Below, piece by piece: positions 1,668-63,295 of a stretch of 64,000 bases of DNA. The notes under the pieces are model-generated. The model made no database searches, was not told the origin of the DNA, and saw only the letters and a program-made list of their open reading frames with translations. The position numbers and the translations under genes are program-made. Origin of the DNA: Bugula neritina (lineage: Eukaryota > Animalia > Bryozoa); assembly GCA_964035545.1 (NCBI GenBank), contig OZ037765.1, positions 32,859,504-32,923,503 of the forward strand, given 5' to 3'. How positions within the stretch are numbered: the first letter of the stretch is position 1; every line of letters starts with the position of its first letter.

Positions 1668-1805
1668 TCTCAGTCAGCTGACTCAGTTAGAGAGACTAGA
1701 CATAGGAGATAATTCTTTCAACACAGTACCAGAAGTTGTGTCATCACTCACGTCACTTAAACAGTTGAATATGAGTAGATGTGATATAGCCAGTCTACCT
1801 GAGAG
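1668..1805 (+). CDS. LRR cassette exon (138 bp, 46 aa, two 23-aa LRRs), gene 1
   Basis: ttacag|T...GAG AG|gtttct; LSQLTQLERLDIGDNSFNTVPEVVSSLTSLKQLNMSRCDIASLPE. Confidence 0.9.
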
Positions 1806-4800
1806 GTTTCTGTTTATTACTACTTTACAACATAGTTATTGCCTTCTTTTAATTTATATTTATACACAGCTTATAATATATAACATAATATGCAGTATAT
1901 AAAAGTTTAGCTCAAAATTTAGACTCAGTCTAAGTTTGTGGAAAAATACAATGGGATGTGAAGGGCGGAGTGTAATACGATATAAAAAGTTATCCTATAT
2001 CACTAGATAAAGGTGGATTATTATTTTGTGTCTACTGCAATATTAAAATACTACAGGATCTCAGCTATGCAAAAATTTATTACTGGGTATTCTGCTAAAG
2101 ATTTCATGGAAAAAGAATATCAGTTATAGAATATTATTAAGGAAAGCAATGACTTACATGAAGTACTGGTACCATCTCACAACTGTATTTTGTTACTCAC
2201 TATTATACATCGAGGGATGGTATTTATATTACTAAAAGAAAGAATTAGGGATGACAATATATCCTGACAATTTAAAATCCATTTACTGTTTCATTGATAA
2301 TTTTTTTACAAACTAGGAATCATTGTTATATAATTCTTTATTCTCTTGCTGTTGTATGCTTTGTATTACAGTTTCTCCCAGTTAACTCAGTTAGAGAAAC
2401 TAGACATAGGAAACAATCCTCTTAACACAGTACCAGATGTTGTGTCATCACTCACATCACTTAAACAGTTGAATATGAATAGTTGTGATATATCCAGTCT
2501 ACCTGAGAGGTTTGTGTTTATTACTATATTTTACAACATTGTTATTGCCTTCTTTTAACTTATATTTATACACAGCTTATAATATATATAACATAAGATG
2601 CAGCATATAAAAGTTTAGCTCAAACTTTAGACTCAGTCTAAGTTTGTGGAAAAATACAATGGGATGTGAAGGGCGGAGTGTAATATGATATAAAAAGTTA
2701 TCCTATATCACTAGATAAAGGTGGATTATTATTTTGTGTCTACTGCAATATTGAAATACTACAGGATCTCAGCTATGTACAATTTTATTACTGGGTATTC
2801 TGCTAAAGATTTCATGAAAAAAGAATATCAGTTATAGAATATTATTAAGGAAAGCAATGACTTACATGAAGTACTGGTACCATCTCACAACTGTATTTTG
2901 TTACTCACTATTATACATCGAGGGATGGTATTTATATTACTAAAAGAAAGAATTAGGGATGACAATATATCCTGACAATTTAAAATCCATTTACTGTTTC
3001 ATTGATAAATTTTTTACAAACTAGGAATCATTGTTGTATAATTCTTTATTTTCTTGCTGTTGTATGCTTTGTATTACAGTCTCTCCCAGTTGACTCAGTT
3101 AGAGGAACTAGACATAGGAGACAATGCTCTCAACACAGTACCAGATGTTGTGTCATCACTCACATCACTTAAACAGCTGAAGATGAATAGTTGTGGTATA
3201 TCCAGTCTACCTGAAAGGTTTGTGTGTCACATGTTTATTACTATTTCACAATATCATTATTAGTGATTTTTATACTATATTTAAATACAGCTTTTAGCAT
3301 AGTTAATAATAATATACAGGATACAGAGTGTAGCTATAATTTCAGCACTCAGCTGGAAATTCCTGTGTTATACAATGATATAGTTATAAGAGTAGAGTGT
3401 AATATAGAAATCCACCCTTAAGCATGGTCATGGATTAGAGCCAATGCCAGGATATTATAGTGATAAAATATTCAGTCATTTATAAAAAAACACAACATAT
3501 TTATTCTTGAAGTATCACGGTGCCGTATATAAAAGTTTATATTTATGCAAGTATTTTGTTAAGCATTTGATAAACATATATATTCCCTAGAGTTAGGGGT
3601 ACATGACTATGACTGTTGGTCACAGGTTAATAATGATGGAATAGTCATAAGAAGAGGTGTGAAATTAATACCTGCAGTAACAAATAGTTATAGCATCAAC
3701 TAGCTTTATTTGTCACCCATTTTAAAAATAAAAATAACAGCCGACTCCCTAATGTATATACTATGCATAGTAATGTATACTATGTATAGTGATGTATACT
3801 ATGTATAGTAATGTATACTGTGTATAGTAATGTATACTATGTATAGTAATGTACAATATGTATAGTTTGTTGTATACTATGTATAGTAATGTATGATATG
3901 TATAGTAGTGTATACTATGTACATATAGTAATGTATACTATGTATAGTGATGTATACTATGTATAGAAATGTATACTATGTATAGTAATGTATACTATGT
4001 ATATAGTAATGTATACTATGTATAGTAATGTATACTATGTATAGTAATGTATAATATGTATAGTAATGGATACTATGTATAGTAATGTATACTATGCATA
4101 GCAATGGATACTATGTATAGTAATGGATACTATGTATAGTAATGTATACTATGTATAGTGATATATACTATGTATAGTAATGTATACTATGTATAGTAAT
4201 GTATACTGTGTATAGTAATGTATACTATGTATAGTGATGTATGCTATGTATAGTAATGCATACTACGTATAGTAATGTATAATATGTATAGTTTATTGTA
4301 TACTATGTATAGTAATGTATGATATGTATAGTAGTGTATACTATGTACATATAGTAATGTATACTATGTATAGTAATGTATACTATGTATAGTAATGTAT
4401 ACTATGTATAGTAATGTATACTATGTATAGTGATGTATACTATGTATAGTAATGTATACTATGTATAGTAATGTATACTATGTATAGTAATGTATACTAT
4501 GTATAGTGGTGTATACTATGTTTAGTAATGTATACTATGTATAGTGGTGTATACTATGTATAGTAATGTATAATATGTATAGTAATGTATACTATGTATA
4601 GTAATGTATAATATGTATAGTAATGTATACTATGTATAGTGATGTATACTATATATAGTAATGTATATTATGTATAGTAATGTATACTATGTATAGTAAT
4701 GTATACTATGTATAATGGTGTATACTATGTATAGTAATGTATACTATGTTTAGTAATGTATACTATGTATAGTAATGTATAATATGTATAGTAATGTATA

Positions 4801-7800
4801 CTATGTATAGTGATGTATACTTATATATATAGTAATGTATATTATGTGTAGTAATGTATACTATGTATAGTGGTGTATACTATGTATTGTAATGTATACT
4901 ATGTATAGTGGTGTATACTATGTATAGTAATGTATACTATGTATAGTAATGGTATACTACGTATAGTAATGTATACTATGTATAGTTATGTATAGTAATG
5001 TATACTATGTATAGTGGTGTATACTATGTATAGTAATGTATAATATGTATAGTAATGTATAGTTTTCATGGTAATGTATAATATGTATAGTAATGTATAA
5101 TATGTATAGTAATGTATAATATGTATAGTAATGTGTACTATGTATAGTAATGTATACTAAGTATAGTAATGTATACTATGTATAGTAATGTATACTATGT
5201 ATAGTGGTGTATACTGTGTATAGTAATGTATACTATGTATAGTGGTGTATACTATGTATAGTAATGTATACTATGTATAGTAATGTATAATATGTATAGT
5301 AATGTATACTATGTATAGTGGTGTATGCTATGTATAGTAATGTATACTATGTATAGTAATGTATGTATGATATGTAAAGTGACAAAATGATCTACTAAGT
5401 CAGTAAACTATTTTATAAACTATGTGTATTTATATAAAGCTTTACCATTGCCTTTTTCTTAAATAGTATAATTGGCTGAATTGCAAGATTAGTTACTGGC
5501 GTATTTGTATTTATATTTATATAGTATTCTGAGCCTCTCAAACCTCCAACATCTGGACATCTCTAATGCAAGGATGACATGTTTACCTGATAACTTCCAC
5601 CAATTATCTAGCTTGTGGCGTCTTAACCTCAGTGGAAATGATACCCTAAAAGCTCTAACACCAGAGATAGCTGACATGCCTCCATTAATGTTAATAACTA
5701 CTCAGGGTTGTGAGTCATTGACTTCACCACCATATGAAGTTTGTCAACAAGGAGCAGGTGCCATCAAGCAATACTACACAGACATTAGAAACAGTGACAG
5801 TGTAGAGGTTTCCATGGTAACTTTTGCTGTCATTGGTCAGACTATGTCAGGGAAGACTAGTCTGATTAGGACACTACAGAGTACAGATAGAACCAGAGTT
5901 CTTACTCACAGAGTAGATGGTGGACTTGATGATGATACAACTCCTGTATTCAAAATGGAAGATGTTTGTGTAGATAATGATGTGCTGAGATTCATTGACT
6001 TTGGAGGTCATGAAATTTATCAGTCAACATATCGGTTTACTTTAAAGCCAAATTGTATCCCAGTTGTTGTTGTGAGTATTGAACAGTATGAAGACCTGCG
6101 GCATGATATTGGTGGTAATGAGGCAGTGAGGCGACTGTATTTTGATTGGTTGTCACATCTTTACCTGACCTATCCTAACCTTGGGCCTCCTAACTTGGTG
6201 TTGACCCATTTAGATAAAATTGATGAAAGCGAGCTCAAAGAGATTGAAGACAGTTTCTTTAGCCACACAAAGCATGTTTTTGAAATCGTCAGTCGCGATG
6301 AAAAGAGCAAGTGGAAGAATGGAGGTGCTTTTGCAAAAATTAAACATTTTGAAGCAAAGAATATGTTCAAAGCTGAAGATATTTATAAAGTTGGAAATTC
6401 TTACTGCGAAGCTTTCATACAGCTAAAACATAGACTGCTGAGAGAGAGTAAGCAGTTTGTAAAAGCAATACCAACAACCTGGGTGGAAGTTGAACAAGCC
6501 TTGAAGAAATTTGAAAAAGGTTACATGTCATTCCAAGATATCTTCAGCCAGTTGTCTAGCAGCATTTCATTAACCGAAAATCAACTTGACATCATCCTGA
6601 CATACATGCACAACTGTGGCATCTTGCTCTGGTACAAGAATGACAAGGATTTGCGTCTTTACATATTCTATCACATCCCCACAGTCACTTCACTCCTGCA
6701 AGTTCTGTTTACTCATGATGACACAGTTTGGCAGCGTCGTCTGTCAGATTTCGCTAATCCTACTTCTGCTGGTCAACAATTCCTCACACTAAATGAATAC
6801 AGTACGTTTGCTGAAAGATTTGCTTCAACAGGAATCATGCATGGTAAAATGTTCAAACATTTGTTAAGAACCGAAACAGACTTTCAAGAGAATGCTGCAA
6901 TGAGAGTTGCGGCTCAAATTTTGCTGTCATTCAGAATAATGTATCGCTCTACACTACAGAATGAAGAGAGCTCTTTCATTGTGCCATACTTCTGCAAGGA
7001 GTTCCTTAGTCACAGCTTACCTACCACAGGGAGTTGTGTCACCTTTCATGCTCAGCTACGTTTTGATGGTCTTCCACTTCCACAGTATGCCTACCACCAG
7101 CTTGCTGTGGACATAGTCAATTCTTTCTCTCAAGAGTCAGACTGCATAACAGCCAGAAATAATGGAGCTCGTGTGGTGAAGAAAGATGTAACCTATCAGC
7201 TGGTACATGACTACAAGTCAGGAATAGTAAACATGTGTGTTTCCTTTGACTCCAGACAAGTATGCAGAGCATGGGAAGTTCTGGTTGACATCACCAACTC
7301 CTCTATTGAATACATTGAGACCAGATGGTGTGCCTGTAAAATAGGATGTAAATTCTTCTGTGCTCACTGTGGGCTAGAACAAGACCACCACCCGTCTAGC
7401 CTCATGAATCCTTCCTGGGTCCAGTACCATGGCAAGAGATGGGCGCCCTTACTTCCTTCTTTCTTGCCTAATCAGCTCAGATGTAAGAACTTTTTTATTG
7501 TTTGCATTACTACTGCTAATTTAAGCAACTATCAACGTTAATTCTTTGAGCTGTGATGCTTCCTATTTACATTTATGTCGATTGTCCGACTTTAGCACAG
7601 CAGCTCAATGATTATGAAGATTTCAATGCAGAGCTTGACTACTTTAAATATAGACGTCTCTTCTCTAGCCACAGACATCACAATGTAAATTGGATTGCTG
7701 AATCAGCTGGTGGGAAGATATTCAGATGCAAGAAAGATTCTTCCACACCTTCATGTCTCCTCAACCCTTGTGAGTACTTTATACACTCATAATATAAAAA

Positions 7801-10364
7801 CGGTTTTGCAGTATCATTGCTTATACAAATTGTGTAGTGTTTCTGAACCTAGTTATTACATTTCTCAAAATTCACTAGTTTATTACCATAACATGTGTTG
7901 CAGGCTCCAGTTTGTCTGAAGAAGAGGGTGCATGTCTTTCAAGTTATCTCAGCAAATATCAAAGGACCAATTCTACAGGTACTGTATGTTCATCTTATTC
8001 TAGTAATTTTTGTTATAGTAACTATAGAAAGAATCTGAGTATGAAATAAACATATGCTCAGTGTGTGAATATTTAAAAACTCTGAATGTTTATGTATGTA
8101 CAACATATACCGTGATGTATTGCTATCAACAGTCTATAAAATGATGTAGCATACGATAATAATAAATTCAGGTGAGACTCATGTTGAATCTGATAATGAA
8201 GAAACTGATGCCGATAGTGATATCTCTGAACACGAAGACTTCAGCTCACCACAAGAAGCCGGTAACATCAAAATGGAAGTTTCTGAGACCAAGAAAAAAA
8301 AGATAAAACATCTGTTCTATTCTAATGAGGTACTTTAATAAATAGTTTATAGTTGTTAGGTATGAACTACATAGTTCAAATATTTTATTTATAAAGTATT
8401 ATTTGTGGTGAAATATCTTTCACTTATAAAAACATGTTGCTCTTTTGAGTATGGTAAATGCACAATAAGTTTTCTCTGCTTTCTACCAACCAGTTGAGCG
8501 CAGCTGAATTTAGTAAATTTAATTATAGAGTTCAGTTGCATTTATATTTTCATTGGTGCTGTAGAGTATTGCAGTGAAGGCTGTCTGCAAAATTCCATAA
8601 AATTATTCAATCTTATCAAACAAATAAGAGAATGATCACCAGTTGTTAAAAAAATTTTATAGGTGTATAAAATGAGTGAGACTGTGCGAGGAAGAGCTCT
8701 GATTATCAACAACAATGTTTTCCGTGATAGACCCGAGCTCTATAGAGAAGGATCTGCAGTGGATGTGTCTAATATTCGAGCAGTTTTGGCACATTTGAAC
8801 TTTGAAGTAGATGTGAGACGTGACAGAACTGCTGAGGTGCCCAAACATATAATGCCATATTTTGTTATACTTGTAAACATTAGACATTTCATATTATTCC
8901 TATATACTATATTTAATCTCATGATTTATTCACAGGAAATGCTGAAGGATATCAAAGATGAGACTCAAAACCCTGACAATGAAGACTATGGTATGCATGT
9001 CACTGTACTCATGTCTCATGGTGGAACATTTGGTGCTCATGGAGTTTTGTATGGAACTGATGTGAAACCAGTGAAGCTTCTCAATGTCTTTGATTTGTTG
9101 TCTTCCGACAACTTCAAGCACATGGCTGGGAAACCTAAAGTTGTGATCGTGGTAGCTTGTAGGAGTGGTGAGTTGTACATATATCTCAACGCTATACTCA
9201 TATATCATGTAAATTTTTATAACGCTTGAAAAGTTTACAGCTCTCCAAATGACATGTTTTATTGTCTTTCTATATGAATAAACTATTATTTTGCTTATTT
9301 TCATTTAAAATTTCTTGTATCTTATTTCTGTACTATAGAACACTAAACCTTGTATTTATCCCAGCAGACAGATACAATAGATAGAGTAGTGCTTCTTTTA
9401 CATTCATAAAATATATTTATTGGAATGTGTAGCTGCCACAGATGCCCTGATAGAGAGAGTAGAGGCTGAGTCTGGAGAGAGTTCCACCAGACAGGAAACT
9501 CAACAGGAAACTCAACGGAAAACTCAACAGGAAACTCAACAGGAAACTCAACAGGAAACTCAACAGGAAACTCAACAAGAAACTCAACAAGAAACTCACC
9601 AAACTACAAGCAGACGGAATGACTTGAATGTTGATGATCTGTTGATACTGCAGTCGTGCTTTGATGGTAAATCTTTGTGCTACTTGTAACTGATGATACT
9701 GTGTAGTATATGTATCTATATGTTGGTAGCTGTAGAAATTCTCTGATTAGCTGTTGAGGTTTAGACTATTATATAATTTTTCTTAAAATAGGAATACTGC
9801 AATATTACTTTCTACAAAACTCTTAATTTATAAATGCCTCATAATTTATGTTTTCTGTTGTTGCTGACCATTAAGGTTTATCATGTAGTTTAAGCCTAAA
9901 ATGTAGAGCGTGTGCAGTTATGTATCTGAAGTATATTAGTGTCAGGTCAACTCTTTCAAACAGAGAAGAAACTATTTTTTCAGGTCGAAACTCTATAAGA
10001 GATGCAAACTATGGAAGTCCATTTATCAGAGAGCTGGTTAAAACTCTGTACAAACATTCTTCTCATAGAGATCTTGTCACTCTGTTTGATATCGTAAGTG
10101 TGCAATATTAGTCTTTGGTACAGATACTGAGAAGTTTCCAGATGTCTCCTGGTATAAGAGATTCAGAGATGTACAGGTGTTCTATTAATCTGATAAACTG
10201 GTACCTTGTTACAGGTGCAAAAAAGAGTTAAGAGAGTCACTAAAAAGATCTCTGAGACACGTCCGGAATTTTCTGAGCAGGTGCCGATAACAACAAAGAC
10301 TCTCACAGACATGAGGAAGATTTTCTTATTTCCTAAACACAAGATCTCTTCTCCTGCCGAATAG
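1668..10364 (+). CDS. Gene 1: LRR-ROC-COR-caspase fusion protein (Roco GTPase + caspase), 5'-partial. Exons 1668-1805, 2372-2509, 3080-3217, 5525-7482, 7596-7769, 7904-7978, 8172-8329, 8663-8836, 8936-9167, 9433-9666, 9984-10093, 10215-10364
   Basis: All introns GT-AG with compatible phases (2,2,2,1,1,1,0,0,1,1,0); joined frame is open for 1225 aa to TAG at 10362-10364. LRRs, ROC G1/G3/G4 motifs, COR and caspase p20/p10 motifs occur in order. Confidence 0.85.
2372..2509 (+). CDS. LRR cassette exon (138 bp), gene 1
   Basis: ttacag|T...AG|gtttgt; FSQLTQLEKLDIGNNPLNTVPDVVSSLTSLKQLNMNSCDISSLPE. Confidence 0.9.
3080..3217 (+). CDS. LRR cassette exon (138 bp), gene 1
   Basis: ttacag|T...AG|gtttgt; LSQLTQLEELDIGDNALNTVPDVVSSLTSLKQLKMNSCGISSLPE. 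Confidence 0.9.
3751..5366. repeat. 19-bp minisatellite (consensus gtaatgtatactatgtata), ~85 copies, intronic
   Basis: Direct tandem periodicity with scattered substitutions. Confidence 0.95.
5525..7482 (+). CDS. Large exon of gene 1: final LRRs, ROC GTPase and COR domain
   Basis: LSNLQHLDISN / LSSLWRLNLSGN / LTSPPYEVC (LRR cap); G1 GQTMSGKTS (5835-5861), G3 IDFGGHEIY, G4 VLTHLDK; COR motifs IPTTW and LTYMHNCGILLWY; C-terminal FCAHC...HP resembling the MFHAS1 tail. Confidence 0.9.
8663..10364 (+). CDS. Caspase (peptidase C14) domain exons of gene 1
   Basis: VYKM..RGRALIINN, REGSAVD, MSHG (His codon 9017-9019), GKPKVVIVVACRS (Cys codon 9158-9160); p10 DLLILQS..G..SIR...GSPFIRELVKTL..DLVTLFDIV..EQVP...LTDMRKIFLFP. 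Confidence 0.9.
9490..9600 (+). repeat. Coding 12-bp minisatellite (caacaggaaact; QQET x ~9) in the caspase intersubunit linker
   Basis: Tandem 12-mers in frame within exon 9433-9666. Confidence 0.9.
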
Positions 10365-16148: not shown

Positions 16149-16368
<220 letters not shown>

Positions 16369-39447: not shown

Positions 39448-39471
39448 ACTGAATGTGTGAAATGGTTTGAA

Positions 39472-42400
39472 CTACTGCTTAGAAACACGTCTACTCCTGA
39501 CTGCATCAGCGTATGAAAAGATCGAGCAACGTGGTTGGGGTGCGTGATTAAGACTTTGTGCACCCGGCGGATGAATTTTGTTTCCATTTCCGCCGATACA
39601 AAAGTTGATATTTCCGTGGTGTTGACAACTCCCACATTTGCTCGATACTTTTCTCGTACGGTTTTCCCCTAGACTTTCATACACGCCGCTTTTAACGCAG
39701 TCGCATATGAAGTCCTTCAAGTATGCGGGGGGTTGCCTCGTACGCTGTCCCCTTTCTAGGGGGGGTGACACGCTTGCTGGTTCGTTAGTAGGGGCCTCTA
39801 ATGGCGTCTCTACTTCACCGTTGGCGGTCACCTCTTCTTGTTCTCCGGATGGAGCCCCTCCCTCCGTGGGGGTTTGCACTTCCGGAACCGGTTCGGTTTC
39901 TGGAAGTGATGGAATTAGACTTGGCGGTGGCGGACACGCTTCTGTTGGTAAAAGCTGCCGCTCCTCTCTCACCAAGTTTTCTTCCTGCGGTATGACCACT
40001 TCGTATTCGGGTCCATTCCGCCGTCGCCCACGCGTTGTTGTCTGCCTCCTGGGCTCTAACAACGGGGGGGCTTCTCCCACTCCGTCGGGGCTAGCCCAAT
40101 ACGGTTTCAAGCGAGACTCATTCTGGATAGACACCTGTCCTGAGCGCTCAATCTTGTACGTATGATTGGGCATAGCCTCGACGACCACGTAGGGGCCTAC
40201 GAACTTAGGCTTCAGTTTATCAGCCTGTCCGCGACGCCTACGGTAATTGACCATCCACACCTTATCTCCCATTTGATAGAGAGGTGGTTCATCGGAATTT
40301 TCGTGCCGCACCTTCCACTGCTGTTGGCGCAGTATATCGTGTGCGGCCTTCATCCGTTCCACTAGTTCACTGGCATACTCGTGAACCGAGTTGTCTTGCT
40401 CTGGAACGTGATAGGTGAGATGGTCAGGGACACGAGTCTCTCTCTCGAGCATCAAGAGGTTTGGGGTCTCACCAGTACTGGTGTGTGGGGTGCTACGGTA
40501 TGCACGCATGACTTGCGGCAACACCGTATCCCATTCCTCTTGACCTCGTCCAAGGAGAAGACTCCGGAGTGCATCACCTAGCATCCGGTTGTTGCGCTCC
40601 ACCACCCCGTTACCTTGAGGGTGGTAGGGGGTGGTCCTGCTCTGATTTACCCCCCAGAGGTGACAAAGGTCGCTCATCAGTTGAGACTGGAATTGAGCGC
40701 CTTGGTCAGAGTGTATCTGTTCGGGGAGCCCAAAATAACAGAATACATGTTGGTCTAGCGCCCTGGCCACTGTTGGGGCTGACGCATCTGGAATAGCCAG
40801 AGCATCCGCCCACCTAGTAAAGTGGTCGGTTAGTACTAGGATCCAATTATTGCCTCTGGGGGTCAGGGGCATGGGTCCGACCAGGTCTACAGCGACTACT
40901 TGCCAGGGCCTACCAGCATATAGCCTCCGCCGTCCTGCTTCACCAGGGGGGCGGCTATGCTTACTGGCCTGGCAGATCTCACACTGTTTGACTCTGAGCC
41001 GGACGTCACGCTCCATTTGTGGCCAATACCACCGGAGTCGTAATTTGGACATCACTCGCTTGACCCCTGCGTGGGCCTGTTTGTGAGTATCCCAAATCAA
41101 CTCACGGCGGATGGCTGTGGGGCAGACTACCCTCTTCCTCTCCGGGTGTCTGCCGCTGGCGGCTAGAGAGATGGTTAGTAACCCATCCTGCCCGATCCGC
41201 AGCGAGTCCCAACGCTGACAGTATAGCCGGAACTCGGCGCATCCCTGTCGTATGCGTTCCTCGCTGGGTCGTCGCCCTTCCCTTTTGGCCCGGTATATGT
41301 CTGCCACGACTCCAGGCAGCTCTTCTTGGAGCTTCTTCAGCTCCCGAACATTACCGGCCAGTACAGGGTTGGCGCGGAGGTTTTGTACATCCTCCGGGGA
41401 CTCATCAACTCTTTGCCTGAGTTGACCTTGGTCCCAGTCAAACGGTGCTTCGTGGTGAACCAGCGTCTCCAACTCGCATCGCGGGGGACCTCCATCCCTC
41501 CTCTCGATGTTGAGACACTGTTTGCAACCTCCGTCAGGTCGGCGACTCAGCCCATCCGCATTGCTGTGTCTCTTGCCCGGTCGATGTTCGATCCGGTATG
41601 AGAATTCAGCTAGGATTTCGAGCCACCGGGCGACCTGACTAGAGGGCTCTGCTCTCTTGCACAACCAGATCAGCGAGGCATGATCCGTACGCAGCCGGAA
41701 CTTCCTGCCATATAGGTATGGTCTGAAGTGCTTCACTGACTTGATTACTGCCAGCAGCTCCTTGCGGGTAGTGCAGTAGTTTCGTTCAGTGGGTGAGAGA
41801 GACTTGCTGTAGTAGGCTACTACTACTTCTCGGCCTTCCTGCACTTGTGACAGCACAGCGCCAACATTTTGGTCACTGGCGTCCGTGTCGAGGATGTACT
41901 CCAGAGTGGGGTCTGGGTAGGCCAAGATGGGCGCCGTTAGTAGGCAGCCCTTGAGGCGGTCGAACGCTTCTTGTTCGACTGGGGTCCACTGCCACGTCAC
42001 TCCCTTTTCGGTGAGCTGGTTTAACGGCTGTGCTATGCCCGCAAAGTCTGGTATGTATTGCCTGTAATACCCTACCAGCCCCAAGAAAGCCCGGAGTCCG
42101 GTCAAGTCTTGGGGGGTGACCCAGTCTTCTACCGCCCGTACCTTTTCGGGATCCGTTGCCACGCCGTTTCGACCGACAACGTGCCCCAGGTACTTGACCT
42201 CCGGCTGCAATAGAGCGCACTTAGAAGGCTTGAGCTTAAGACCGGCACCTCGGAGTCTCTCAAAGACCTCCTGCAGACGACTGACATGTGTCTCGAAGTC
42301 TGGGGAGATCACGATGACATCATCGAGGTAGATCAGCAGTGTCTTCCAATGGAGCCCGCTGAGGACTTGCTCCATCAGCCTCTGGAAGGTGGCCGGGGCG

Positions 42401-44103
42401 GAGGTCAACCCGAAAGGCAGCACCTTCCACTTCCACAAACCGTCCCGTGTGATAAACGCCGCTTTCTCTTGGGCGTCGGGACTCAGAGGAACTTGCCAAT
42501 AGCCGCTTAGCAAGTCTAACGTACTGAAGTACTTGCTGCCGGCTAGGGCGTCCAATGACTCGTCAATACGAGGTAGAGGGTAGGCGTCCTGTATGGTTAC
42601 GCTATTGAGTTTGCGGTAATCCACACAGAACCGCCAACTGCCGTCTTTCTTCCGGACCAGTACGACTGGCGAGCTCCACGCGCTATGGGCGGGCTCTATC
42701 AGTCCCCGATCCAGAAGATCCCGTACTTGTCGGCTAACCTCCTTCTCTTTCTCCGGCCCCAGCCTGCGTGTGGGCTGCCGGACAGGGACTGTCCCTGCAG
42801 TCAGCGGTATTTCGTGTCTGACAATTCCAGTCAGTCCCACGTCATGCTCTCCGCTGCTGAACACATCACCGTAGTCGCGCAGTAACTTAGCCATAACTTG
42901 GCGTTCTCTGTTACTTGCGCAGCCGCTACAGGCTGTGTCATACAACTCCCGGAGATGTGTGGGGACTGCCCCTCGCCCTTGAGTCGGGCACTGAGGGAGT
43001 GCCTCTGTCGCATCACCCAGCGACGGGCCTACGTCTTCCTCCTGAACAGAGTGAAAACGGCCCAGCATCGACCCAGCCGGGAGCTTGATAGGCTCGGTAA
43101 AGGGGTTGACGCACTGCACTAAGATCTCCCCTTGTTCAGTCAGCTGATTCAGACTGCTGGCAAGTTGGATCTTTTCGTGCGCGCCTTCAACCACCCCGAG
43201 TCCAGAGATCCGGCTATTATTCACCCTGCAGTGAATGGTAGCCCGGGAGCGGCCTGGTATGATACGGTTGCGTACCACTTGCACACCTCCCACTAAAGGG
43301 CGGCCGAACTTGTCGACGCAGGCGAGTTCCCGCCCGGACATCATCATTGCAGATCTGCTAAAATCTATGTGACATCCGTGCCGTTTAAGGAACGGCATCC
43401 CGAGGATAGCATCCTCCTTGAGCTGACTGACGATGAACGTCTCTTGGATCGTTTGATCACGGACTCGTCCCGTCAGCTCAATTATACCATAGAAGGGAAG
43501 GCACGACCCGTCAGCTAGGGTGCCGTATTCCCCTTCATATGATTCCATCTCGCCCCTGACCTTAGCACTGAGGGTGTCGAAGAGTTGGCGGCTTAAGAGG
43601 TTTGTGGTACAGCCCGAATCAATGAGGAAAGTAACAGCTTTGCCTTCCAGTTTACCGGGCAAGAAATAGCTGTTCCCATGGGGCTGCACCTGAACTCTCT
43701 CTTCAGGCCCTACTCTCGCAGGGAGTACCTCCCTCGCTTTGGGTCGCGAAGGAGGTCTCTTGGGGCGGTGGTAGGTAGGCCTCGGGGGTGCCGAGGTTAG
43801 ATCCCCGGCTACCTTTGTGGGCTCCCATCCAGATTCTTGGACTCGTAGCCCTGTGAATCTGTTGTGAAGGGGCATAGAAAAGGCAGCCGCGGGGCGAAGC
43901 CCCTTGCCGGTCCGTCGTGGCTGTTGCCACTGTTGGTTGCCAGTACGCGGTACCCGTCTGGGTGACCTGCGTTTCTTCTTCCCTGGGGGTTTCATCGTCG
44001 GCCCGCAGGAGGTGGGAACATCTGCGGGCCGCGGTAGTTTAACCCCTGATTTAGGAAGGGACAGTATCGGCGGAAATGCCCTTGATTTCCGCACTCCCAG
44101 CAA
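39472..44103 (-). CDS. pol: Pol polyprotein (PR-RT-RH-IN)
   Basis: FLIDSGCT protease, LIYLDD RT, DTDAS RNase H, HHCC plus D-D-E integrase (VDLVGP/SDQG/VERNNR), GPY motif; Gypsy domain order. Confidence 0.97.
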   Translation of the reverse strand: MLGVRKSRAFPPILSLPKSGVKLPRPADVPTSCGPTMKPPGKKKRRSPRRVPRTGNQQWQQPRRTGKGLRPAAAFSMPLHNRFTGLRVQESGWEPTKVAGDLTSAPPRPTYHRPKRPPSRPKAREVLPARVGPEERVQVQPHGNSYFLPGKLEGKAVTFLIDSGCTTNLLSRQLFDTLSAKVRGEMESYEGEYGTLADGSCLPFYGIIELTGRVRDQTIQETFIVSQLKEDAILGMPFLKRHGCHIDFSRSAMMMSGRELACVDKFGRPLVGGVQVVRNRIIPGRSRATIHCRVNNSRISGLGVVEGAHEKIQLASSLNQLTEQGEILVQCVNPFTEPIKLPAGSMLGRFHSVQEEDVGPSLGDATEALPQCPTQGRGAVPTHLRELYDTACSGCASNRERQVMAKLLRDYGDVFSSGEHDVGLTGIVRHEIPLTAGTVPVRQPTRRLGPEKEKEVSRQVRDLLDRGLIEPAHSAWSSPVVLVRKKDGSWRFCVDYRKLNSVTIQDAYPLPRIDESLDALAGSKYFSTLDLLSGYWQVPLSPDAQEKAAFITRDGLWKWKVLPFGLTSAPATFQRLMEQVLSGLHWKTLLIYLDDVIVISPDFETHVSRLQEVFERLRGAGLKLKPSKCALLQPEVKYLGHVVGRNGVATDPEKVRAVEDWVTPQDLTGLRAFLGLVGYYRQYIPDFAGIAQPLNQLTEKGVTWQWTPVEQEAFDRLKGCLLTAPILAYPDPTLEYILDTDASDQNVGAVLSQVQEGREVVVAYYSKSLSPTERNYCTTRKELLAVIKSVKHFRPYLYGRKFRLRTDHASLIWLCKRAEPSSQVARWLEILAEFSYRIEHRPGKRHSNADGLSRRPDGGCKQCLNIERRDGGPPRCELETLVHHEAPFDWDQGQLRQRVDESPEDVQNLRANPVLAGNVRELKKLQEELPGVVADIYRAKREGRRPSEERIRQGCAEFRLYCQRWDSLRIGQDGLLTISLAASGRHPERKRVVCPTAIRRELIWDTHKQAHAGVKRVMSKLRLRWYWPQMERDVRLRVKQCEICQASKHSRPPGEAGRRRLYAGRPWQVVAVDLVGPMPLTPRGNNWILVLTDHFTRWADALAIPDASAPTVARALDQHVFCYFGLPEQIHSDQGAQFQSQLMSDLCHLWGVNQSRTTPYHPQGNGVVERNNRMLGDALRSLLLGRGQEEWDTVLPQVMRAYRSTPHTSTGETPNLLMLERETRVPDHLTYHVPEQDNSVHEYASELVERMKAAHDILRQQQWKVRHENSDEPPLYQMGDKVWMVNYRRRRGQADKLKPKFVGPYVVVEAMPNHTYKIERSGQVSIQNESRLKPYWASPDGVGEAPPLLEPRRQTTTRGRRRNGPEYEVVIPQEENLVREERQLLPTEACPPPPSLIPSLPETEPVPEVQTPTEGGAPSGEQEEVTANGEVETPLEAPTNEPASVSPPLERGQRTRQPPAYLKDFICDCVKSGVYESLGENRTRKVSSKCGSCQHHGNINFCIGGNGNKIHPPGAQSLNHAPQPRCSIFSYADAVRSRRVSKQ

Positions 44104-44945
44104 AAACTGACTGTTTCTCCCTGTGGCGGCGCCGATGGCCGCATGGGCTCAGGGGCGGTACTCACTGGGTTTTGTGGTGTCAGTGTTGCTATCAGCTTGG
44201 CTAGCATGTCTGTCAGTTGAGTGACTTTCGATGCCGTCGCCAACTGGGACACGGCAGCCGCGGCGGGGGTTTCCTCCCCTTGTCCCGCGGCCGTGTCTGC
44301 GCGGTCTATCTCCACTTGACGGGAGCTTCCGCGATTTTTATGCATTTGATTAGCTAGGAGGTAAGCTTCCCCCTCAGTCAGAGCATCTTCAACGGTGGTG
44401 ACTCCCCTAGCTAGAAACTGGTGGTGGAGACCCAGATCGTCGACAGATGCTATGAAAGCGTCGAGGGTATACCTCTCGCGGTTGACTGGGGGCAAGTCGC
44501 TGTACGCGATCTGTGCCAGCTTCATGATCGCGGCGGCATGCTCCCGCAGCGGGGTGCGGGGATCACGCCGCAACCTCTGCAATCGGGCCCTGGCATCTGT
44601 AGCAGGGAGGCCGAAGCGGGCCCGCAGAGAAGCAAAGATATTATCAATGTCTACGCCCAGCCCATAAGGCTTGGCTTTGTCCATCAATGCCATTCTAAGC
44701 TTCAGCAAGGCCACCCTAGGGGGCCACTGGGCGACGTCCATTACGTCGCTAAACTCTTGGATAAATTGTTCCACCTCCTCTTCACCCGTGAAGGTGGGCG
44801 CCTTTAACCGGTAGCGGTCCTCAGCTAGTTCTCGCGGAACCCTTCGCTCTTCTACTACATGGTTAACAGGCATTGTCTCTACAGCATTGTCTCTACGCTC
44901 ACCTTCTATTGCCGGTGGTTGAGTTCCAGCATTTTCAGTCTCCAT
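43992..44945 (-). CDS. gag: Gag
   Basis: 317 aa upstream of and overlapping pol; CCHC knuckle CWECGNQGHFRRYC. Confidence 0.93.
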   Translation of the reverse strand: METENAGTQPPAIEGERRDNAVETMPVNHVVEERRVPRELAEDRYRLKAPTFTGEEEVEQFIQEFSDVMDVAQWPPRVALLKLRMALMDKAKPYGLGVDIDNIFASLRARFGLPATDARARLQRLRRDPRTPLREHAAAIMKLAQIAYSDLPPVNRERYTLDAFIASVDDLGLHHQFLARGVTTVEDALTEGEAYLLANQMHKNRGSSRQVEIDRADTAAGQGEETPAAAAVSQLATASKVTQLTDMLAKLIATLTPQNPVSTAPEPMRPSAPPQGETVSFCWECGNQGHFRRYCPFLNQGLNYRGPQMFPPPAGRR

Positions 44946-44957
44946 CTTGGATGCACT

Positions 44958-44975
44958 ATCCCACTGCTGCCACCA
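44958..44975 (-). promoter_or_regulatory. Primer-binding site (tRNA-Leu type, TGGTGGCAGCAGTGGGAT)
   Basis: 1 nt from the 5' LTR, begins TGG, complementary to the eukaryotic tRNA-Leu 3' end. Confidence 0.8.
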
Positions 44976-44976
44976 C

Positions 44977-45281
44977 TGTTAAGATTTTCAGATTTAGGGT
45001 TGATGTGCTATCCAGAGAGTCTATTTATTTGCTATAGAACTGCACCAGGATAAGTCGAGTGAACGAGTATATTTTACACACAATTATACATTATAAAAAC
45101 GATACATTATATTCAAACAAGTTACACATCTAATCTATTTGACACTCTAGCTTCGACTGCCTTAGCAGCGGGAAACTATAATTGCTGCTAACTATCAAAC
45201 ACGCTAATTGGCTATCCATTGTTCCGGGTCAATTACGCGACCCTACATGTTGTGCTGCTGGTAGTTCCACGAACCACCACA
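44977..45281 (-). repeat. 5' LTR
   Basis: Direct repeat of 37774-38078. Confidence 0.97.
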
Positions 45282-58530: not shown

Positions 58531-59199
58531 CATTTGCGGAGGTGCCCTCAACTACCACATCCTGAGCAGATGGTAGTCCGTTCCAAAGGCGGTTCCAATC
58601 CTGACCTCTGGAGTAGTTTAGCGGGCCCTACCATCTGAGACTGTCACCACTTAAGAGATAGTAGGGGAACTGGCATTGGCGGTAGCTACGTGAGCAGCCA
58701 GGGGATGTTGTGGGATAGGGGATGTTTGGCTTATATAGGAGAAATTGGGGGCTATACTTTCCACAGCGACTGCAATAACAAATCAAAGTAAATAAATAAA
58801 TATCTATGCTATATAATATTCTTTGTTCTATCCATTTGGAGATGTTTATTTTTAAGCTTTTCAATTGGCAATATGAACATTTCTCAAATGTGTGATTTTT
58901 AGATGAAATTTTTAAGCAGTCACCCTATCCAATAAATGATGTCTTTCAACGGTGTTTAGGAAGTTTTGTCTAAGAGCTTCTGTTTTGATATAACTCATTA
59001 TAATAAGTCAAAGATTTGCTAAAGAAGTAAGCATCTAGATGGAAACATGCTCAAACTGCAATAATAAGTATACATTTTTATGGTTATGGTGACATAATCT
59101 CAATAGAAAAAAATTCTCTCTCAAAACAACTCAGATGTGCTCAGTTTAATGCTATACTGGTTATCAGTTTTACCTGAGTGATTATTTTCTGTATTAAAG

Positions 59200-62100
59200 A
59201 GAGCAGCATAGTCTGTGGGCAACAGCTAACCAGTTGTTAGAAGGTGTAGAAGTTTCAGGTTCTCCTGTTGACTTATCTCTGAATGAAGCATTGATTGACT
59301 TTGAAGAGCAAAAGGTAATTTTTTGTCAAAACATCTCAAAGATTTATCGAGTGAATGAATGCTTTAAACTTTAAAAAGCCATGATTTGTTGATGTGAATT
59401 GAGTATTTAAGGTTTGATATCAAAAAAATATCTAGTAGGTATAATGCAAACACTTGTGCTTTTGTTAGCAAGTAGAAAAGATATTCATGTGCGAATTGTT
59501 AATTTGTAATTTTAGACTGAAACACAGATTGCTGAAACTAAGGAAAAAGGTAATTTTACTAATATAATACAAAAGCTGTAATATATTCTCAAAAACTTAA
59601 TGGTTAAAGCCCCTGATTGCAATGCAAGCATAAATAGTTAAGTAATGCATGCACTTGCAAATAACCAAATAATATGTATAAATGATAATTGTATCTCTTA
59701 CAATTGTATATTGTATACAAATGTTTCTTCATCAGCTTCTTAATAGACAATATTACTAGAGCAAGGTATCTTCTGATGTCATACAACTACAGTTTGGATG
59801 CCTTCGAAGACACTGCCAGCTCACTAAGCTACACAGCAACTGCAATCAAATCAAAGTATATGTAACTTATAAAACTAAAAGTCCCAAAAAAGGACCTGCA
59901 TTGTGCTTTTCCTTTCGTCAGTTTTATTTAGTGTGTAATGTCACGTATCATGCTTTATTTGAGTATGATGACTCAGAAACAATCAACAGTTGATATTTCC
60001 TGTATGATAGTCTTTTTGGTCTTGGGTTTCTAAAATCTCAGACCAAGTCATTACAGGCAGGCTACTTGTTTGTAAGCGTTATTTTATTGACGATGCAGCG
60101 TTAGTTTCATTTAGTGAGTCAGCCTATCTTACAGTGACCAGTAAATTGCTTCGATAGTTCTGCAGTTAGTTAAGTGAGTCTGAGAATAAACTGAAGTTCT
60201 CTGTTAGCCAGTTTCGCAATAACTTTGTGATTAATTCCAATACATTCCTATTGAAGACACAGCAATAAATGCATCTTTGATCAGTGCTTCTAAATTTTTG
60301 TTGCATAATTTCTTCTGATGTGAACTTTCAAAAGAGATAGATTATAGACTTTTAGCTGCAAACATAGCAACTGTTATATTTCACAAAAAAATTTAGAAAA
60401 AACTTAGGGAGGGGGTGCTAAAATAAGCCCTTACAGAGCTGTAGATGCATACCTTAAGCTATATATAAGTTTGAATTTTTTTATCTGCCAAAATGGGGTG
60501 GCAATTAAAATGTGAAAACAGGATAGCATTGAAGCTCTGTTGATAAAATACCAACTACAGTGCTGGGTGGGTCATATCTTTAGGTTGGATTGGAACAAAA
60601 TGGCGCTGCTTGGTAAATTGTGTGACGCCTAACCAAGATTTGTTTACAGACCAACTTAAATGTTCTCTTTTGATTTAATTAGGTGTAACCTCGTATGTCT
60701 ATTTTCTCTCCTAGATCCCTTTGGCTACGAAGTGTTGCTAATTACAAATATTAGATAAAATATTACATAATTTTAAAGACAGTTATATAGATTAAAATAA
60801 TCATCACTGCGCAATTAAAAATATTCACTATAGCTGCCTGTTTAAAGCGCTGGTCATGTGTACAGAGTTGCATGACTATTATGAGTTTATCAAAGACTGG
60901 TAGGATATACTTTGTAATAATTACTTCAAATACCTATTCCAGCAGGCCATAAATTCTTTCAATGAATTTTAAAAATAATTGATAACTACTACTGCAACTA
61001 AATGGGTTTGACAAGTATTTAGATGTTGGTTATACATGGAGTAGAAGACATTGCGTTTCATCAACTATAATTATTTAACCTGCATTAACTGGCTGCAAGA
61101 AAGTTGTGCTGAAAAGAAATGATATATCCACAAATTTAGCTGCAGTATTTGTACATGCATGTCAATAATATTGTGTCTCTGTTGTTACAGAAATGATCAG
61201 AATCTGGTTCAGACATTCTGGACAGGATCCTGTAGACTTGGAAGATGTACGCCAAGCTACAACCAAATCATACACCTTGAGTAAAGTGAAGACTCAAGTT
61301 GGGAGTTATCAACTCACTCACCTCACGTTAGAGGAGATAATTCCTAAGAATATAGGAGAGATTGCTTCTCATGCTGTCTGTTTGGTACTCCGTAAGATAA
61401 CTGACAAGCAGAGTCTGAATAAGTGAGTATTTATAGTTGAGTATAACTGAGTCAGACAACTCACACATATTGTATGATTTCAATATGAATATGTTGATGA
61501 CTTTTAGAAAGTTGTACATGGTACGCTATATTAGGAGTTGAATACACAGCAGCGATGTGATGTATATTATTATGTTAATTTATATTCTTCTCCGATTGTA
61601 TGTTCTTATATTGTATCTTTATCTTACAGTCTCAGTCAGCTGACTCAGTTAGAGATACTAGACATAAAAGACAATACTCTCAACACAGTACCAGATGTTG
61701 TGTCATCACTCACATCACTTAAACAGTTAAATATGAGTGGATGTGGCATATCCAGTCTACCCGAGAGGTTTGTGTGTCACATGTTTATTACTACTTCACA
61801 ACATCATTATTACTACTCTGTAACCTATATTTATACACAACCTATATAGTATATAAAATAATATCCAGACTATAGGGTGTGGCTATAATCTCTGTACTCA
61901 GCTTGAGTTCCCTGTTTTATACAATTAAACAGTAAGGGTAGAGTATAATTATTTGGAGAGCCCTCCTCTCAAATGACCATGAATAAAACCTTTAGGACTC
62001 GTGAAAATTTCATAAGTAATTTGAGTATTTTTAATGTTGTGACATGCACAAAAAGCCAATGTGTTTTTAAGTGTCATATTAGGTGCTAAAGCCAGCTTTA

Positions 62101-63295
62101 CCCAGGATATATCTTTGACAAATAATCAATATAGTATTTACAAAATACAAGTCGTGATAACATGTATATCTCTGTGCTGTATAAAATACATATGTTATGT
62201 GTAATTTTATTCTCTTGTCATAGCATAAATTTATATTACAGTCTCTGTCAGCTGACTCAGTTAAAGATACTAGACATAGGAGGGAATCCTCTCAACACAG
62301 TACCAGATGTTGTGTCATCACTCACATCACTTAAACAGTTGAATATGAGTCACTGTAGAATATCCAGTCTACCTGAGAGGTTTGTGCTTCACACGCCTGT
62401 TACTACTTCACAACCTCATTATTACCTTGATCCCTTTAAAGTATATCTGTACACAATTTATATTATGCAAAATAATATAAAGGATATAAATGTGTAGGTG
62501 AATTTTGTACCCAGCTTAAAGTTTTGGTAAAACACAATGAGATGGGAAGGGTGGAGTGCATTATGATTTGAAAACCACCCTCTCTCATGAAAAGGTGGAT
62601 TATAATTTTGTTCTACTTCTATATTAAAATATCCCAGCTATAACGTAAAATTATATTGCTACTTAGCATTTTGCTAAAGTTTTCATGTGGAAAGAATACT
62701 AGATATAGGTTGTTACTAAAGAAAACAGTGGTCTAGGGGCTTGAACCCGACAAAGGCCATTAGTGATGTTAGGAAGACTACCCAGTACCCAGTCACAATT
62801 GCTCCTGTGCCCCATCTGAATAAGTCCTTAGCCCAGTTTAACGAAAAATCATTTCATCGGGGATTTTCTCACAGGGATGGTGATTATAAATTTTCGTCAG
62901 TTTTATTTTTAAATAAAGCGAACAAACCACTTGTTATATAAAGTACTAATACCTATTAGTGACATAATTTGTTACTGATCACTTATACATCAAATCTCAT
63001 TTATCTTATTAGATGAAACAATTTAAGGTAAAATATTGTGAAGATTGCAAAAAAAATATTTTGTTTTGTCGAGAGAACTTTTCGAAGCTATAAACTGCTG
63101 CATGATATTTCATTATCTTTCTGTTGTAAATTTTTATATTATATTCTTATATTACAGTTTCTCCCAGCTGACTCAGTTAGAGACACTAGACATGGTAGGG
63201 AATCCTCTCAACACAGTACCAGATGTTGTGTCATCACTCACATCACTTAAACAGTTGAATATGAGTAACTTTGGTATATTGAGTGTACTTGAGAG
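59200..63295 (+). CDS. Gene 2 (paralog of gene 1), 3'-partial: exons 59200-59314, 59516-59549, 61191-61422, then LRR cassettes 61630-61767, 62242-62379, 63158-63295
   Basis: GT-AG junctions with compatible phases (0,1,2,2,2); three 138-bp LRR exons nearly identical to those of gene 1; ROC/COR/caspase part presumably beyond the window. Confidence 0.75.
61630..61767 (+). CDS. LRR cassette exon (138 bp), gene 2
   Basis: LSQLTQLEILDIKDNTLNTVPDVVSSLTSLKQLNMSGCGISSLPE, phase 2/2. Confidence 0.9.
62242..62379 (+). CDS. LRR cassette exon (138 bp), gene 2
   Basis: LCQLTQLKILDIGGNPLNTVPDVVSSLTSLKQLNMSHCRISSLPE, phase 2/2. Confidence 0.9.
63158..63295 (+). CDS. LRR cassette exon (138 bp), gene 2
   Basis: FSQLTQLETLDMVGNPLNTVPDVVSSLTSLKQLNMSNFGILSVLE, phase 2/2. 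Confidence 0.88.

Follow-up and report, generated by a model that had tools for sequence, protein, structure and literature searches.

Cassette exons encoding leucine-rich repeats in a large Roc-COR gene family of the bryozoan Bugula neritina: duplication, exchange and signs of diversifying selection

The closest described counterparts of the genes considered here are the LRR-ROC-COR genes of the brown algae Ectocarpus and Saccharina, whose exon-shuffled LRRs prompted the suggestion of a novel class of immune receptors (Zambounis et al. 2012, PMC3341825; Teng et al. 2024, PMC11378527). In these genes the LRR exons are of equal length and symmetric in phase 2, their number varies between paralogues, inactivated pseudo-exons are present, and positive selection acts on four positions of the concave face; the appeal made to Ectocarpus in the original prediction, as a precedent for LRR exon shuffling and diversifying selection in ROCO genes, is thus a fair account of the brown-algal papers. 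The same combination of LRR-Roc-COR architecture, phase-2 symmetric exons of one length, variable exon number and inactivated pseudo-exons is seen in the cheilostome bryozoan Bugula neritina, in and around a 64,000-nt stretch of genomic DNA (hereafter the window), and the four algal positions correspond to x3, x5, x7, and x8 of the Bugula cassette. One brown-algal group further carries a C-terminal peptidase domain, where the predicted effector in Bugula is a caspase. We consider it likely that the Bugula genes form a very large germline family that encodes cytosolic LRR-Roc-COR proteins, here joined to a caspase, and that the cassettes provide the ligand-binding modules of these proteins and have been diversified by duplication, exchange, and positive selection.

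Each of the six cassettes in the window is 138 nt long, with AG directly before it and GT directly after it. A cassette starts with T and ends with AG, giving a split Ser codon when cassettes are joined, and therefore the introns on either side are in phase 2. The expectation of six 138-bp exons of identical, symmetric phase is verified, and the variable residues first listed for them (ER/EK/EE/EI/KI/ET and so forth) match the re-made translations exactly. One cassette encodes a 46-residue unit of two 23-residue LRRs, and the two-copy LRR model of Pfam, LRR_4, matches all six exons when they are scanned singly (27.5-34.2 bits; gathering cut-off 27). A 32-nt core within the cassette occurs six times in the window at no more than one mismatch, against none expected by chance, and at least 314 times across the genome at up to three mismatches, against none in the control. 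The anatomy holds in the wider family: of 118 sampled cassettes, 112 have the 138-nt length, AG/GT flanks, and phase 2/2, and the arrays range from 2 to at least 13 cassettes. The other six lack the AG or the GT at the 138-nt spacing and appear to be inactivated pseudo-exons in or near the arrays; one, L006:376, is further interrupted by an in-frame stop, and two have a 9-nt deletion.

The window cassettes had been taken to form a single sensor. This reading was rejected: they belong to two neighboring paralogous genes, A and B, with three cassettes each, and about 58 kb and a Ty3/gypsy element lie between the first three and the last three (Table 1).

Table 1. Features of genes A and B in the window
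Feature	Position	Strand	Basis
Gene A cassette 1	1668..1805	+	AG/GT flanks, translation, LRR_4 29.3 bits; PEVV core variant
Intron after cassette 1	1806..2371	+	Tandem-duplicate partner of intron 2510-3079
Gene A cassette 2	2372..2509	+	AG/GT flanks, translation, LRR_4 34.2 bits
Intron after cassette 2	2510..3079	+	Duplicate of intron 1806-2371
Gene A cassette 3	3080..3217	+	AG/GT flanks, translation, LRR_4 above cut-off
Gene A large exon: last LRRs, Roc GTPase, COR	5525..7482	+	Pfam matches, translation; donor at 7482 tentative
Gene A caspase (p20) coding region	8663..9229	+	Peptidase_C14 match; interrupted by an intron-like stretch
Gene B exon before first cassette	61169..61422	+	Ends ...KQSLN, codon AAT split after AA, GTGAGT donor
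Gene B cassette 1	61630..61767	+	AG/GT flanks, translation, LRR_4 above cut-off
Gene B cassette 2	62242..62379	+	AG/GT flanks, translation, LRR_4 above cut-off
Gene B cassette 3	63158..63295	+	AG/GT flanks, open frame, LRR_4 27.5 bits

In gene A the three cassettes are followed by an LRR-Roc-COR exon and then by a caspase exon. The acceptor at 5524/5525 keeps the phase-2 frame, and the large exon is an open frame of 669 aa with matches to LRR_8 (26.8 bits) and COR-A (40.9 bits, cut-off 35.3; residues 323-388). The latter lies downstream of a Roc match (residues 108-198) that scores 20 bits, below the Pfam cut-off of 27; the translation has the P-loop GQTMSGKT and a DFGG motif, and the precomputed annotation PF08477 is carried by paralogues and homologues of the protein. 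The caspase region matches Peptidase_C14 at E = 7.4e-22 and contains SHG, while the Cys motif, canonically QACxG, reads VACRS in gene A and QACRV in the paralogue P0008. These COR-A and Peptidase_C14 matches, together with the sub-cut-off Roc, uphold the assignment of the host genes to an LRR-Roc-COR-caspase type. Because no recognizable exon precedes gene A cassette 1 in positions 1-1667 of the window and the preceding 10 kb (11.6 kb in all), gene A may be truncated. Gene B, which begins near 61.2 kb, continues beyond the window end. The exon before its first cassette matched no Pfam family; it has eight copies in the clade of contig C1 and about 34, at the 51-62% level, on contig C6. The third cassette of gene B is divergent, with Phe in place of Cys39, ILSVLE for ISSLPE, and a distance of at least 14 nt to every other cassette, and its frame is open.

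The genome holds at least 136 candidate Roc-COR exons; all 66 that were scored have E values no higher than about 1e-142, and nearly all of them are open frames. The large exon of gene A has eight genomic copies at 81% identity or more, and none at that level was found near the cassette arrays located at C1:32.79-32.85 Mb. In a comparison of the C1 and C6 clades, which lie on different contigs, the Roc-COR proteins are 38-41% identical and their exons are saturated at silent sites (pS 0.76), and the N-terminal exon has a pS of 0.36-0.45, whereas the cassette scaffold, common to both clades, stands at only 0.148. This disparity between scaffold and Roc-COR exon argues that cassettes have spread between genes; judged by silent divergence, the scaffold is much more recent than the genes that carry it. 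Collinear paralogues show a mosaic of intron divergence, from 0/400 to 23/100 (chi-square p = 1.5e-33), and the nearest neighbors of a cassette by exon and by intron disagree. Duplicate cassette units with an intron divergence of 0.000-0.022 point to ongoing duplication. Within gene A itself, the introns after cassettes 1 and 2 differ at 16 of 566 aligned bases (2.8%) as against 17 of 138 (12.3%) in the flanking exons (Fisher p = 2.5e-5). That cassettes are duplicated and swapped in frame, as originally proposed, agrees with both observations, the tandem units with 0-3% intron divergence and the scaffold shared by diverged Roco clades. The process would involve tandem duplication of one, two, or three cassettes at a time, together with their introns, and exchange of cassettes between paralogues, including members of deeply diverged Roco clades that lie on different contigs, through gene conversion, unequal recombination, or exon shuffling; its product would be the near-uniform scaffold.

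Variation within the cassette is distributed very unevenly. Across the 112 intact cassettes the pattern LxxLxLxxN/CxL occurs twice per 46 residues, with nearly invariant L/I/M and N/C positions. Entropy reaches 1.6-3.5 bits at codons 10, 12, 14, 15, 17, 35, 37, 38, and 40, whereas in the core (codons 19-31) it does not exceed about 0.4 bits. The nine variable codons fall on x3, x5, x7, x8, and x10 of the first repeat and on x5, x7, x8, and x10 of the second, so that the clustering of changes at x positions first noticed in six exons extends to the family. The LRR domain of a Watersipora homologue (P0024:20-300), from which the Bugula cassettes are read by homology, was modeled as a canonical solenoid with a period of 23-24 residues and strands on x3-L4-x5 in the first repeat of a pair and on L4-x5-L6 (mean pLDDT 63.8; 74-92 over the repeats). 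Its top PDB matches are LRR solenoids, including SHOC2, internalin A, and the Chlorobium Roco LRR, and a VLR-derived repebody is among its structural matches. The nine variable positions are accordingly predicted from the model to lie on or beside the β-strand of the concave face. Watersipora subatra has the same gene layout, with two-LRR exons ahead of a large Roc-COR exon; its homologues bear the NCBI name MFHAS1.

The core had also been described as almost invariant even at silent sites. Its conservation is real: third-position diversity is about 0.03 compared with 0.3-0.5 in aligned introns, and recent, independent pairs give a synonymous rate of 0.0315 for the core and a rate of 0.067 for introns (p = 0.003). 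It is, however, modest, since non-core scaffold synonymous sites change at the intron rate (38.5/582 = 0.066) and the core-specific part amounts to about two-fold. Comparison of these rates suggests that the silent conservation mostly reflects concerted evolution and the recent spread of cassettes, with the roughly two-fold extra confined to the core. An RNA-level function as the cause of the silent-site invariance was rejected on the same two grounds, the intron rate outside the core and the merely two-fold slower core.

Diversifying selection was assessed by counting methods in which introns and the silent sites of the scaffold served as neutral reference. At the hypervariable codons pN/pS is 2.0 and 1.6, compared with 0.52 elsewhere. 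In 37 phylogenetically independent cassette pairs, matched by flanking intron, nonsynonymous divergence at the hypervariable codons is 0.284 versus 0.067 for introns (odds ratio 5.5, p = 7e-73), while the scaffold stands at 0.051 for synonymous and 0.0295 for nonsynonymous change; the hypervariable value is thus 4.2-fold that of introns and 5.5-fold that of silent scaffold sites. Those codons were first picked by their variability, and a set of x positions fixed a priori was used as a separate test, with a nonsynonymous divergence of 0.217, or 3.2 times that of introns (p = 1e-52). Intron divergence would understate the age of a pair if conversion homogenized introns more than exons, and the scaffold silent sites interleaved in the same exons give the same answer as the introns. 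On these sequence comparisons, the data support diversifying selection, as originally proposed, at the x positions, which change two to eight times faster than the flanking introns. Strong positive selection would then drive the turnover of amino acids at nine positions per cassette, and the result would be a set of sensors that share one solenoid frame but differ in binding surface and in number of repeats.

The pattern might be explained with no positive selection at all, if the x positions were simply unconstrained and gene conversion kept the rest uniform. Gene conversion and mosaicism are clearly present, and the hypervariable positions were originally chosen for being variable; nevertheless, unconstrained sites cannot exceed the neutral rate, as both the hypervariable and the a-priori set do. 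Moreover, codons 10, 12, 14, 15, and 17 interleave with the conserved codons 11, 13, and 16, an arrangement in which conversion tracts cannot divide one set from the other. By our own calculation, swapped exons with neutral hypervariable sites predict a scaffold synonymous divergence of about 0.09, as against the 0.051 observed. We therefore regard this explanation as highly improbable. A mutational mechanism, in the form of templated micro-conversion like that of chicken Ig or VLR copy-choice, or of hypermutation targeted to β-strand codons, germline or somatic, could account for the very high apparent omega at single codons. At codon 15, nonsynonymous divergence is 0.51 against 0.067 for introns, and all three bases differ in four of seven collinear exon pairs with a mean intron divergence of 5.6%; the decoupled histories of exons and introns would also fit. 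Against such a mechanism, the cassettes sit in ordinary spliced arrays within complete genes and have canonical splice sites, there is no sign of incomplete germline genes or flanking donor libraries, and the site specificity tracks protein structure (x positions in both repeats) with no DNA motif visible. It seems very unlikely to be the main source of the diversity, for which we prefer selection on duplicated and exchanged cassettes.

Three RNA-like runs cover the exons and not the introns. A cassette-to-cassette junction, CCTGAGAG joined to TCTCAG, is present in the RNA-like runs X1 and X3 and absent from the DNA run, and an annotated Watersipora homologue includes four consecutive cassettes. 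These read data are short de Bruijn (Logan) contigs, broken or chimeric across paralogues at the shared 32-nt core, and, being matched at 95% identity, they may derive from paralogues and are not gene specific. In a contig of X3 the 3' end of a paralogue's copy of the gene B exon that precedes the cassettes adjoins the 5' edge of a cassette of the type at 1668; this copy reads GGAG where gene B reads GCAG. The 2-2 symmetry of the cassettes, their near-identical splice sites, and their uniform AG/GT contexts would lend themselves to combinatorial alternative splicing, in which skipping or choice of cassettes yields many isoforms per gene on top of the germline diversity. Alternative splicing of LRR exons is indeed established for the brown-algal ROCO genes, with up to nine variants that differ in their LRR combinations. 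In Bugula, however, the joints seen are generic neighbor-type junctions and paralogue-chimeric contigs only, and the skipping of one cassette would remove two repeats from a rigid solenoid, a loss that may or may not be tolerated; such splicing is, in our estimate, doubtful.

As to function, the variable face would bind non-self or danger ligands, binding would throw the Roc-COR GTPase switch, and the C-terminal caspase would be activated by induced proximity, which would place the family in immunity or allorecognition. Colony allorecognition (fusion or rejection) in place of pathogen sensing, with selection for individuality, has in its favor that bryozoans are colonial and show allo-incompatibility (mentioned in PMC8195603), as well as the extreme diversification and the presence of a death effector, the caspase. 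Yet most allorecognition determinants known from animals are surface proteins, the diversity here is spread over more than 100 paralogues and not concentrated in a few hyperpolymorphic loci, and no signal peptide or transmembrane segment was identified in the coding parts read, which stop short of the N-termini; we consider this role quite unlikely. A more far-reaching proposal is an inflammasome-like system of bryozoan non-self recognition in which Roco GTPases replace NLRs: the sensor surfaces of more than 130 LRR-Roc-COR(-caspase) genes would be diversified in the germline by shuffling of cassettes, and alternative inclusion or copy-number change of the symmetric cassettes, at the transcript or somatic level, would in addition give single genes many receptor forms that directly trigger a fused caspase. 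In this full form it appears unlikely, and a germline-encoded family of cytosolic sensors remains the reading we favor.

Several known systems share elements of this design. Vertebrate MFHAS1/MASL1 has the same LRR-Roc-COR domain order but only about 22% identity to the window protein; the MFHAS1 proteins of Octopus, amphioxus, and gecko are distant relatives at 21-24% identity (E values of 1e-16 to 8e-11). MFHAS1 is single copy and has no caspase, and we know of no cassette-exon array or diversifying selection in it. The LRRs of plant NLRs and PGIPs and of lamprey VLRs likewise combine hypervariable, selected, exposed residues of an xxLxLxx β-strand with a conserved LRR scaffold. However, those of plant NLRs are not built from one-exon-per-unit cassettes, and VLRs arise by somatic assembly from donor cassettes without splice sites, whereas the Bugula cassettes are exons of germline genes, ordered within them, bounded by canonical AG/GT, and spliced together in the RNA-like data. 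Arthropod Dscam1 also uses tandem arrays of duplicated in-frame exons that code for a unit of a recognition domain, but there the cassettes are mutually exclusive and encode an Ig domain, while those of Bugula encode LRRs and are spliced in series, as the junctions in X1 and X3 indicate.

A literature search yielded no relevant paper on expansions of Roco, Roco-caspase, or MFHAS1 genes in bryozoans, and for Roco genes, LRR shuffling in the exon-per-repeat manner, together with diversifying selection, has so far been described only from brown algae. The bryozoan version differs from the algal one in its host, an animal, in its unit (two LRRs per 138-bp exon versus one per 72-bp exon), and in its repertoire (at least 136 Roc-COR exons versus 9-47 genes per species); the homogenization of its scaffold across saturated Roc-COR clades is a feature not reported in the brown-algal papers. 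The two designs almost certainly arose independently, by convergence. The same design in an animal implies that it evolved at least twice, which strengthens the case for LRR-Roco proteins as innate receptors and offers in lophotrochozoans a candidate receptor family beyond the TLR/NLR paradigm. With the proposed sensor, switch, and protease on a single chain, the architecture is directly testable, and the coupling of a homogenized scaffold with positive selection on interleaved codons should be useful both for understanding the evolution of binding surfaces and for the engineering of LRR binders.

The six cassettes of the window, each coding for two LRRs (46 residues), are genuine exons by every sequence criterion, namely, length, AG/GT flanks, phase, and profile score. 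All of them begin with T and end with AG, so that a Ser codon is divided between its second and third bases at both edges; thus, the introns on either side are in phase 2 and the cassettes are symmetric. Scanned singly, each reaches the cut-off of LRR_4, the Pfam model for a two-copy LRR, and their near-uniform 32-nt core has six matches in the window at one mismatch or fewer and none in shuffled sequences. The variable residues named in the original prediction agree with our translations. Instead of the single sensor that it had assembled from the six cassettes, however, there are two neighboring paralogous Roco genes, A and B, with three window cassettes apiece. Past the window end, gene B continues with two further cassettes and one dead cassette, and it owns a separate Roc-COR exon, which shares 92% identity with the gene A one. 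No counterpart of the exon preceding the gene B cassettes is recognizable for gene A within the window or the preceding 10 kb, and gene A may be 5'-truncated.

Features of the two Roco genes and of the DNA between them (window positions)
Feature	Position	Strand	Remarks
Gene A cassettes	1668-1805, 2372-2509, 3080-3217	+	138 nt each, AG before, GT after
Gene A large exon	from 5525	+	last LRRs, Roc GTPase (P-loop, DFGG), COR-A
Gene A caspase p20 region	8663-9229	+	
Ty3/gypsy-type LTR retroelement	38370-45000	-	between the two Roco genes
Gene B exon, 84 codons	61169-61422	+	precedes first cassette
Gene B cassettes	61630-61767, 62242-62379, 63158-63295	+	138 nt each, AG before, GT after

Several further features of the locus deserve mention. 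The segment at 1-744, where the missing upstream exon of gene A is expected, is a multicopy element with a DNA-run depth of 1000-7500, as against approximately 175 for single-copy introns, and is covered by the RNA-like runs too. About 4 to 5 kb upstream of the window (L004:5030-5563), an open frame with the P-loop GKSGCGKT lies in AT-rich surroundings and may belong to a mobile element. A 19-bp unit, repeated in tandem about 84 times (3757-5364), takes up most of the intron that separates the last cassette of gene A from its Roc-COR exon. The caspase of gene A retains the catalytic Cys and the His of the SHG motif, and at 9140-9160 it reads VACRS in place of the canonical QACxG (QACRV in the paralogue protein P0008). 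Nine copies of a 12-bp repeat (9491-9598) encode a (QETQ)n tract within an open frame that runs on into a caspase region like the C-terminal part of P0008 (DDLLILQSCF). The retroelement has an unbroken pol frame of 1543 aa (protease, RT, RNase H, and integrase) and a GC content of about 55%, versus about 30% in its surroundings.

The window and 20 other loci yielded 118 cassettes, 112 of which count as intact: their AG/GT flanks are 138 nt apart and their frame is open. When codons are numbered from the split Ser codon as 1, amino acid entropy in the intact set exceeds 1.6 bits solely at codons 10, 12, 14, 15, 17, 35, 37, 38, and 40. The first five of these hypervariable codons are x3, x5, x7, x8, and x10 of the first motif, LxxLxLxxNxL, and the other four are x5, x7, x8, and x10 of the second, LxxLxLxxCxL; hence, the changes do gather at the x positions of LxxLxLxxN/C, as had been predicted. 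Nearly no amino acid variation is seen at core codons 19-31. In a model of the LRR domain of the homologue from Watersipora subatra, a strand recurs every 23-24 residues on x3-L4-x5 or L4-x5-L6, and the model matches SHOC2, internalin A with E-cadherin, the Chlorobium Roco LRR, and a VLR-derived repebody, solenoids that bind their partners via the concave face. It is therefore reasonable, given this model, the models made for brown algae, and the established geometry of LRRs, to regard the nine variable positions as ligand-facing. Two cassettes (L018:3557 and L003:3503) share one kind of 9-nt in-frame deletion, which takes out three core residues, with the donor moved correspondingly to give a 129-nt variant exon.

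Across the family, pN/pS over the nine hypervariable codons is 2.0 on contig C1 and 1.6 on C6, versus 0.52 for the other codons. For a better test, with the flanking introns as a local clock, cassettes were paired greedily by intron similarity, each being used once, to yield 37 independent pairs. Intron divergence in these pairs is 0.067, nonhypervariable divergence is 0.051 at synonymous and 0.0295 at nonsynonymous sites, and hypervariable nonsynonymous divergence is 0.284, well above that of introns (odds ratio, 5.5; p = 7e-73). Synonymous sites of the noncore scaffold, taken on their own, evolve at the intron level (0.066), whereas the nine hypervariable codons, taken singly, all run at 2.2-7.6 times the intron rate. 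The a priori set of x positions (x2, x3, x5, x7, x8, and x10 of both repeats) likewise has a rate of 0.217 (p = 1e-52). Within the window itself, introns 1806-2371 and 2510-3079 are 2.8% divergent, whereas the exons flanking them differ by 12.3% and 7.2% (p = 2.5e-5 and 0.018). Unconstrained sites cannot exceed the rate of neutral DNA, nor can conversion tracts produce the contrast, since fast codons alternate with slow ones. Thus, positive diversifying selection on the nine codons is supported by counting-based comparison with introns and scaffold silent sites. These tests bear out the diversification of the proposed recognition surface; recognition itself is what we infer.

Cassette units are still being duplicated: several adjacent units have an intron divergence of 0.000-0.022 and identical or nearly identical exons, with repeated blocks spanning one to three cassettes. 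The histories of the cassettes are also mosaic: the introns of two collinear paralogues differ at anything from 0/400 to 23/100 positions per stretch (chi-square p = 1.5e-33), and the nearest exon and the nearest intron of one cassette often come from different copies. Comparison of the Roco clades named after contigs C1 and C6 shows that the cassette is far younger than its host genes: their Roc-COR exons share only 38-41% identity and have reached saturation at silent sites (pS 0.76), and pS is 0.36-0.45 for the N-terminal exons and 0.148 for the cassette scaffolds. Exchange within and between clades thus holds the scaffold uniform, and at the same time the binding positions are pushed to diverge. 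Such exchange also accounts for most of the near-invariance of the core at silent sites, which the original prediction had noted; beyond it, an approximately 2-fold extra reduction is confined to the core (synonymous rate, 0.0315 versus 0.067 for introns; p = 0.003) and could reflect an anchor for conversion, a splicing enhancer, or another cause. For the C1 family, the first 20 or so nucleotides of the intron after the cassette (GTTTGTGTGTCACATGTTTATTAC..., e.g., 3218-3240 and 61768-61790) are conserved like the exon core (diversity, 0.02-0.07); the C6 family lacks such conservation (0.24-0.34).

In three RNA-like runs, drawn from three studies, coverage extends over the cassette exons and spares the introns; in a DNA run, the introns are covered too. 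A cassette-to-cassette junction at the predicted splice sites, CCTGAGAG followed directly by TCTCAG, occurs in two RNA-like runs (X1 and X3) and is absent from the DNA run. In one X3 contig, the loose end that adjoins a 1668-type cassette at its 5' edge matches the 3' end of a 61169-type exon from a paralogue (GGAG; GCAG in gene B). As all of these data are short assembled contigs, which fit at more than one place and are chimeric across paralogues, the junctions speak for the family rather than for single genes or isoforms. Combinatorial splicing of the cassettes is possible by analogy, in keeping with their symmetric phase, their uniform splice sites, and the brown-algal precedent (PMC3341825; PMC11378527).

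The family is large. The Roc-COR exon of gene A is 77-82% identical to hypothetical proteins of Bugula neritina and 28-35% identical to Watersipora subatra proteins named "MFHAS1 homolog." Genome-wide (216 Mb), the cassette core has 314 copies at three mismatches or fewer, versus 0 for the reversed control, and there are at least 136 candidate Roc-COR exons. All 66 that were scored have E values no higher than about 1e-142, the frame is open in nearly all of them, and 8 are at least 81% identical to that of gene A. Large tandem clusters hold the candidates (e.g., C7:7.58-7.72 Mb, C1:33.8-35.0 Mb, and C6:3.5-6.2 Mb), and their number exceeds the 9-47 ROCO genes per species of brown algae, stated in the brown-algal ROCO literature to be the most of any organism reported. 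Arrays of the same cassette type also lie at C1:32.79-32.85 Mb (L001-L003) and C1:33.07-33.095 Mb (L009, L010, and the first part of L011), near which no Roc-COR exon at least 81% identical was found among the scored matches. Clades on C7, at 0.35 Mb of C1, and on C8 have the 46-residue exon design too, each with its own homogenized scaffold and with variation at identical positions. The homologous Watersipora gene carries its LRRs on two-LRR exons of 141-153 nt, followed by a 1977-nt Roc-COR exon; hence, the design is older than the split of these cheilostomes.

Bryozoan Roco genes are the subject of no paper in the literature searched, and the proteins are annotated solely as "hypothetical" or "MFHAS1 homolog." We infer an immune or allorecognition role for the family. 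A VLR-like system is ruled out by the cassettes being ordinary spliced germline exons and a Dscam-like one by their being joined serially. The nearest known system is the ROCO family of brown algae (Zambounis et al. 2012, PMC3341825; Teng et al. 2024, PMC11378527), with shuffled phase-2 exons of 72 bp, pseudo-exons, positive selection at four sites of the concave face, and alternatively spliced LRR exons. Every defining feature of that system testable here is also found in the bryozoan family. However, the latter belongs to an animal, carries two LRRs per 138 bp rather than one per 72 bp, and differs in repertoire size and in having a caspase as its effector, and one type of cassette has demonstrably spread over deeply diverged Roco clades.
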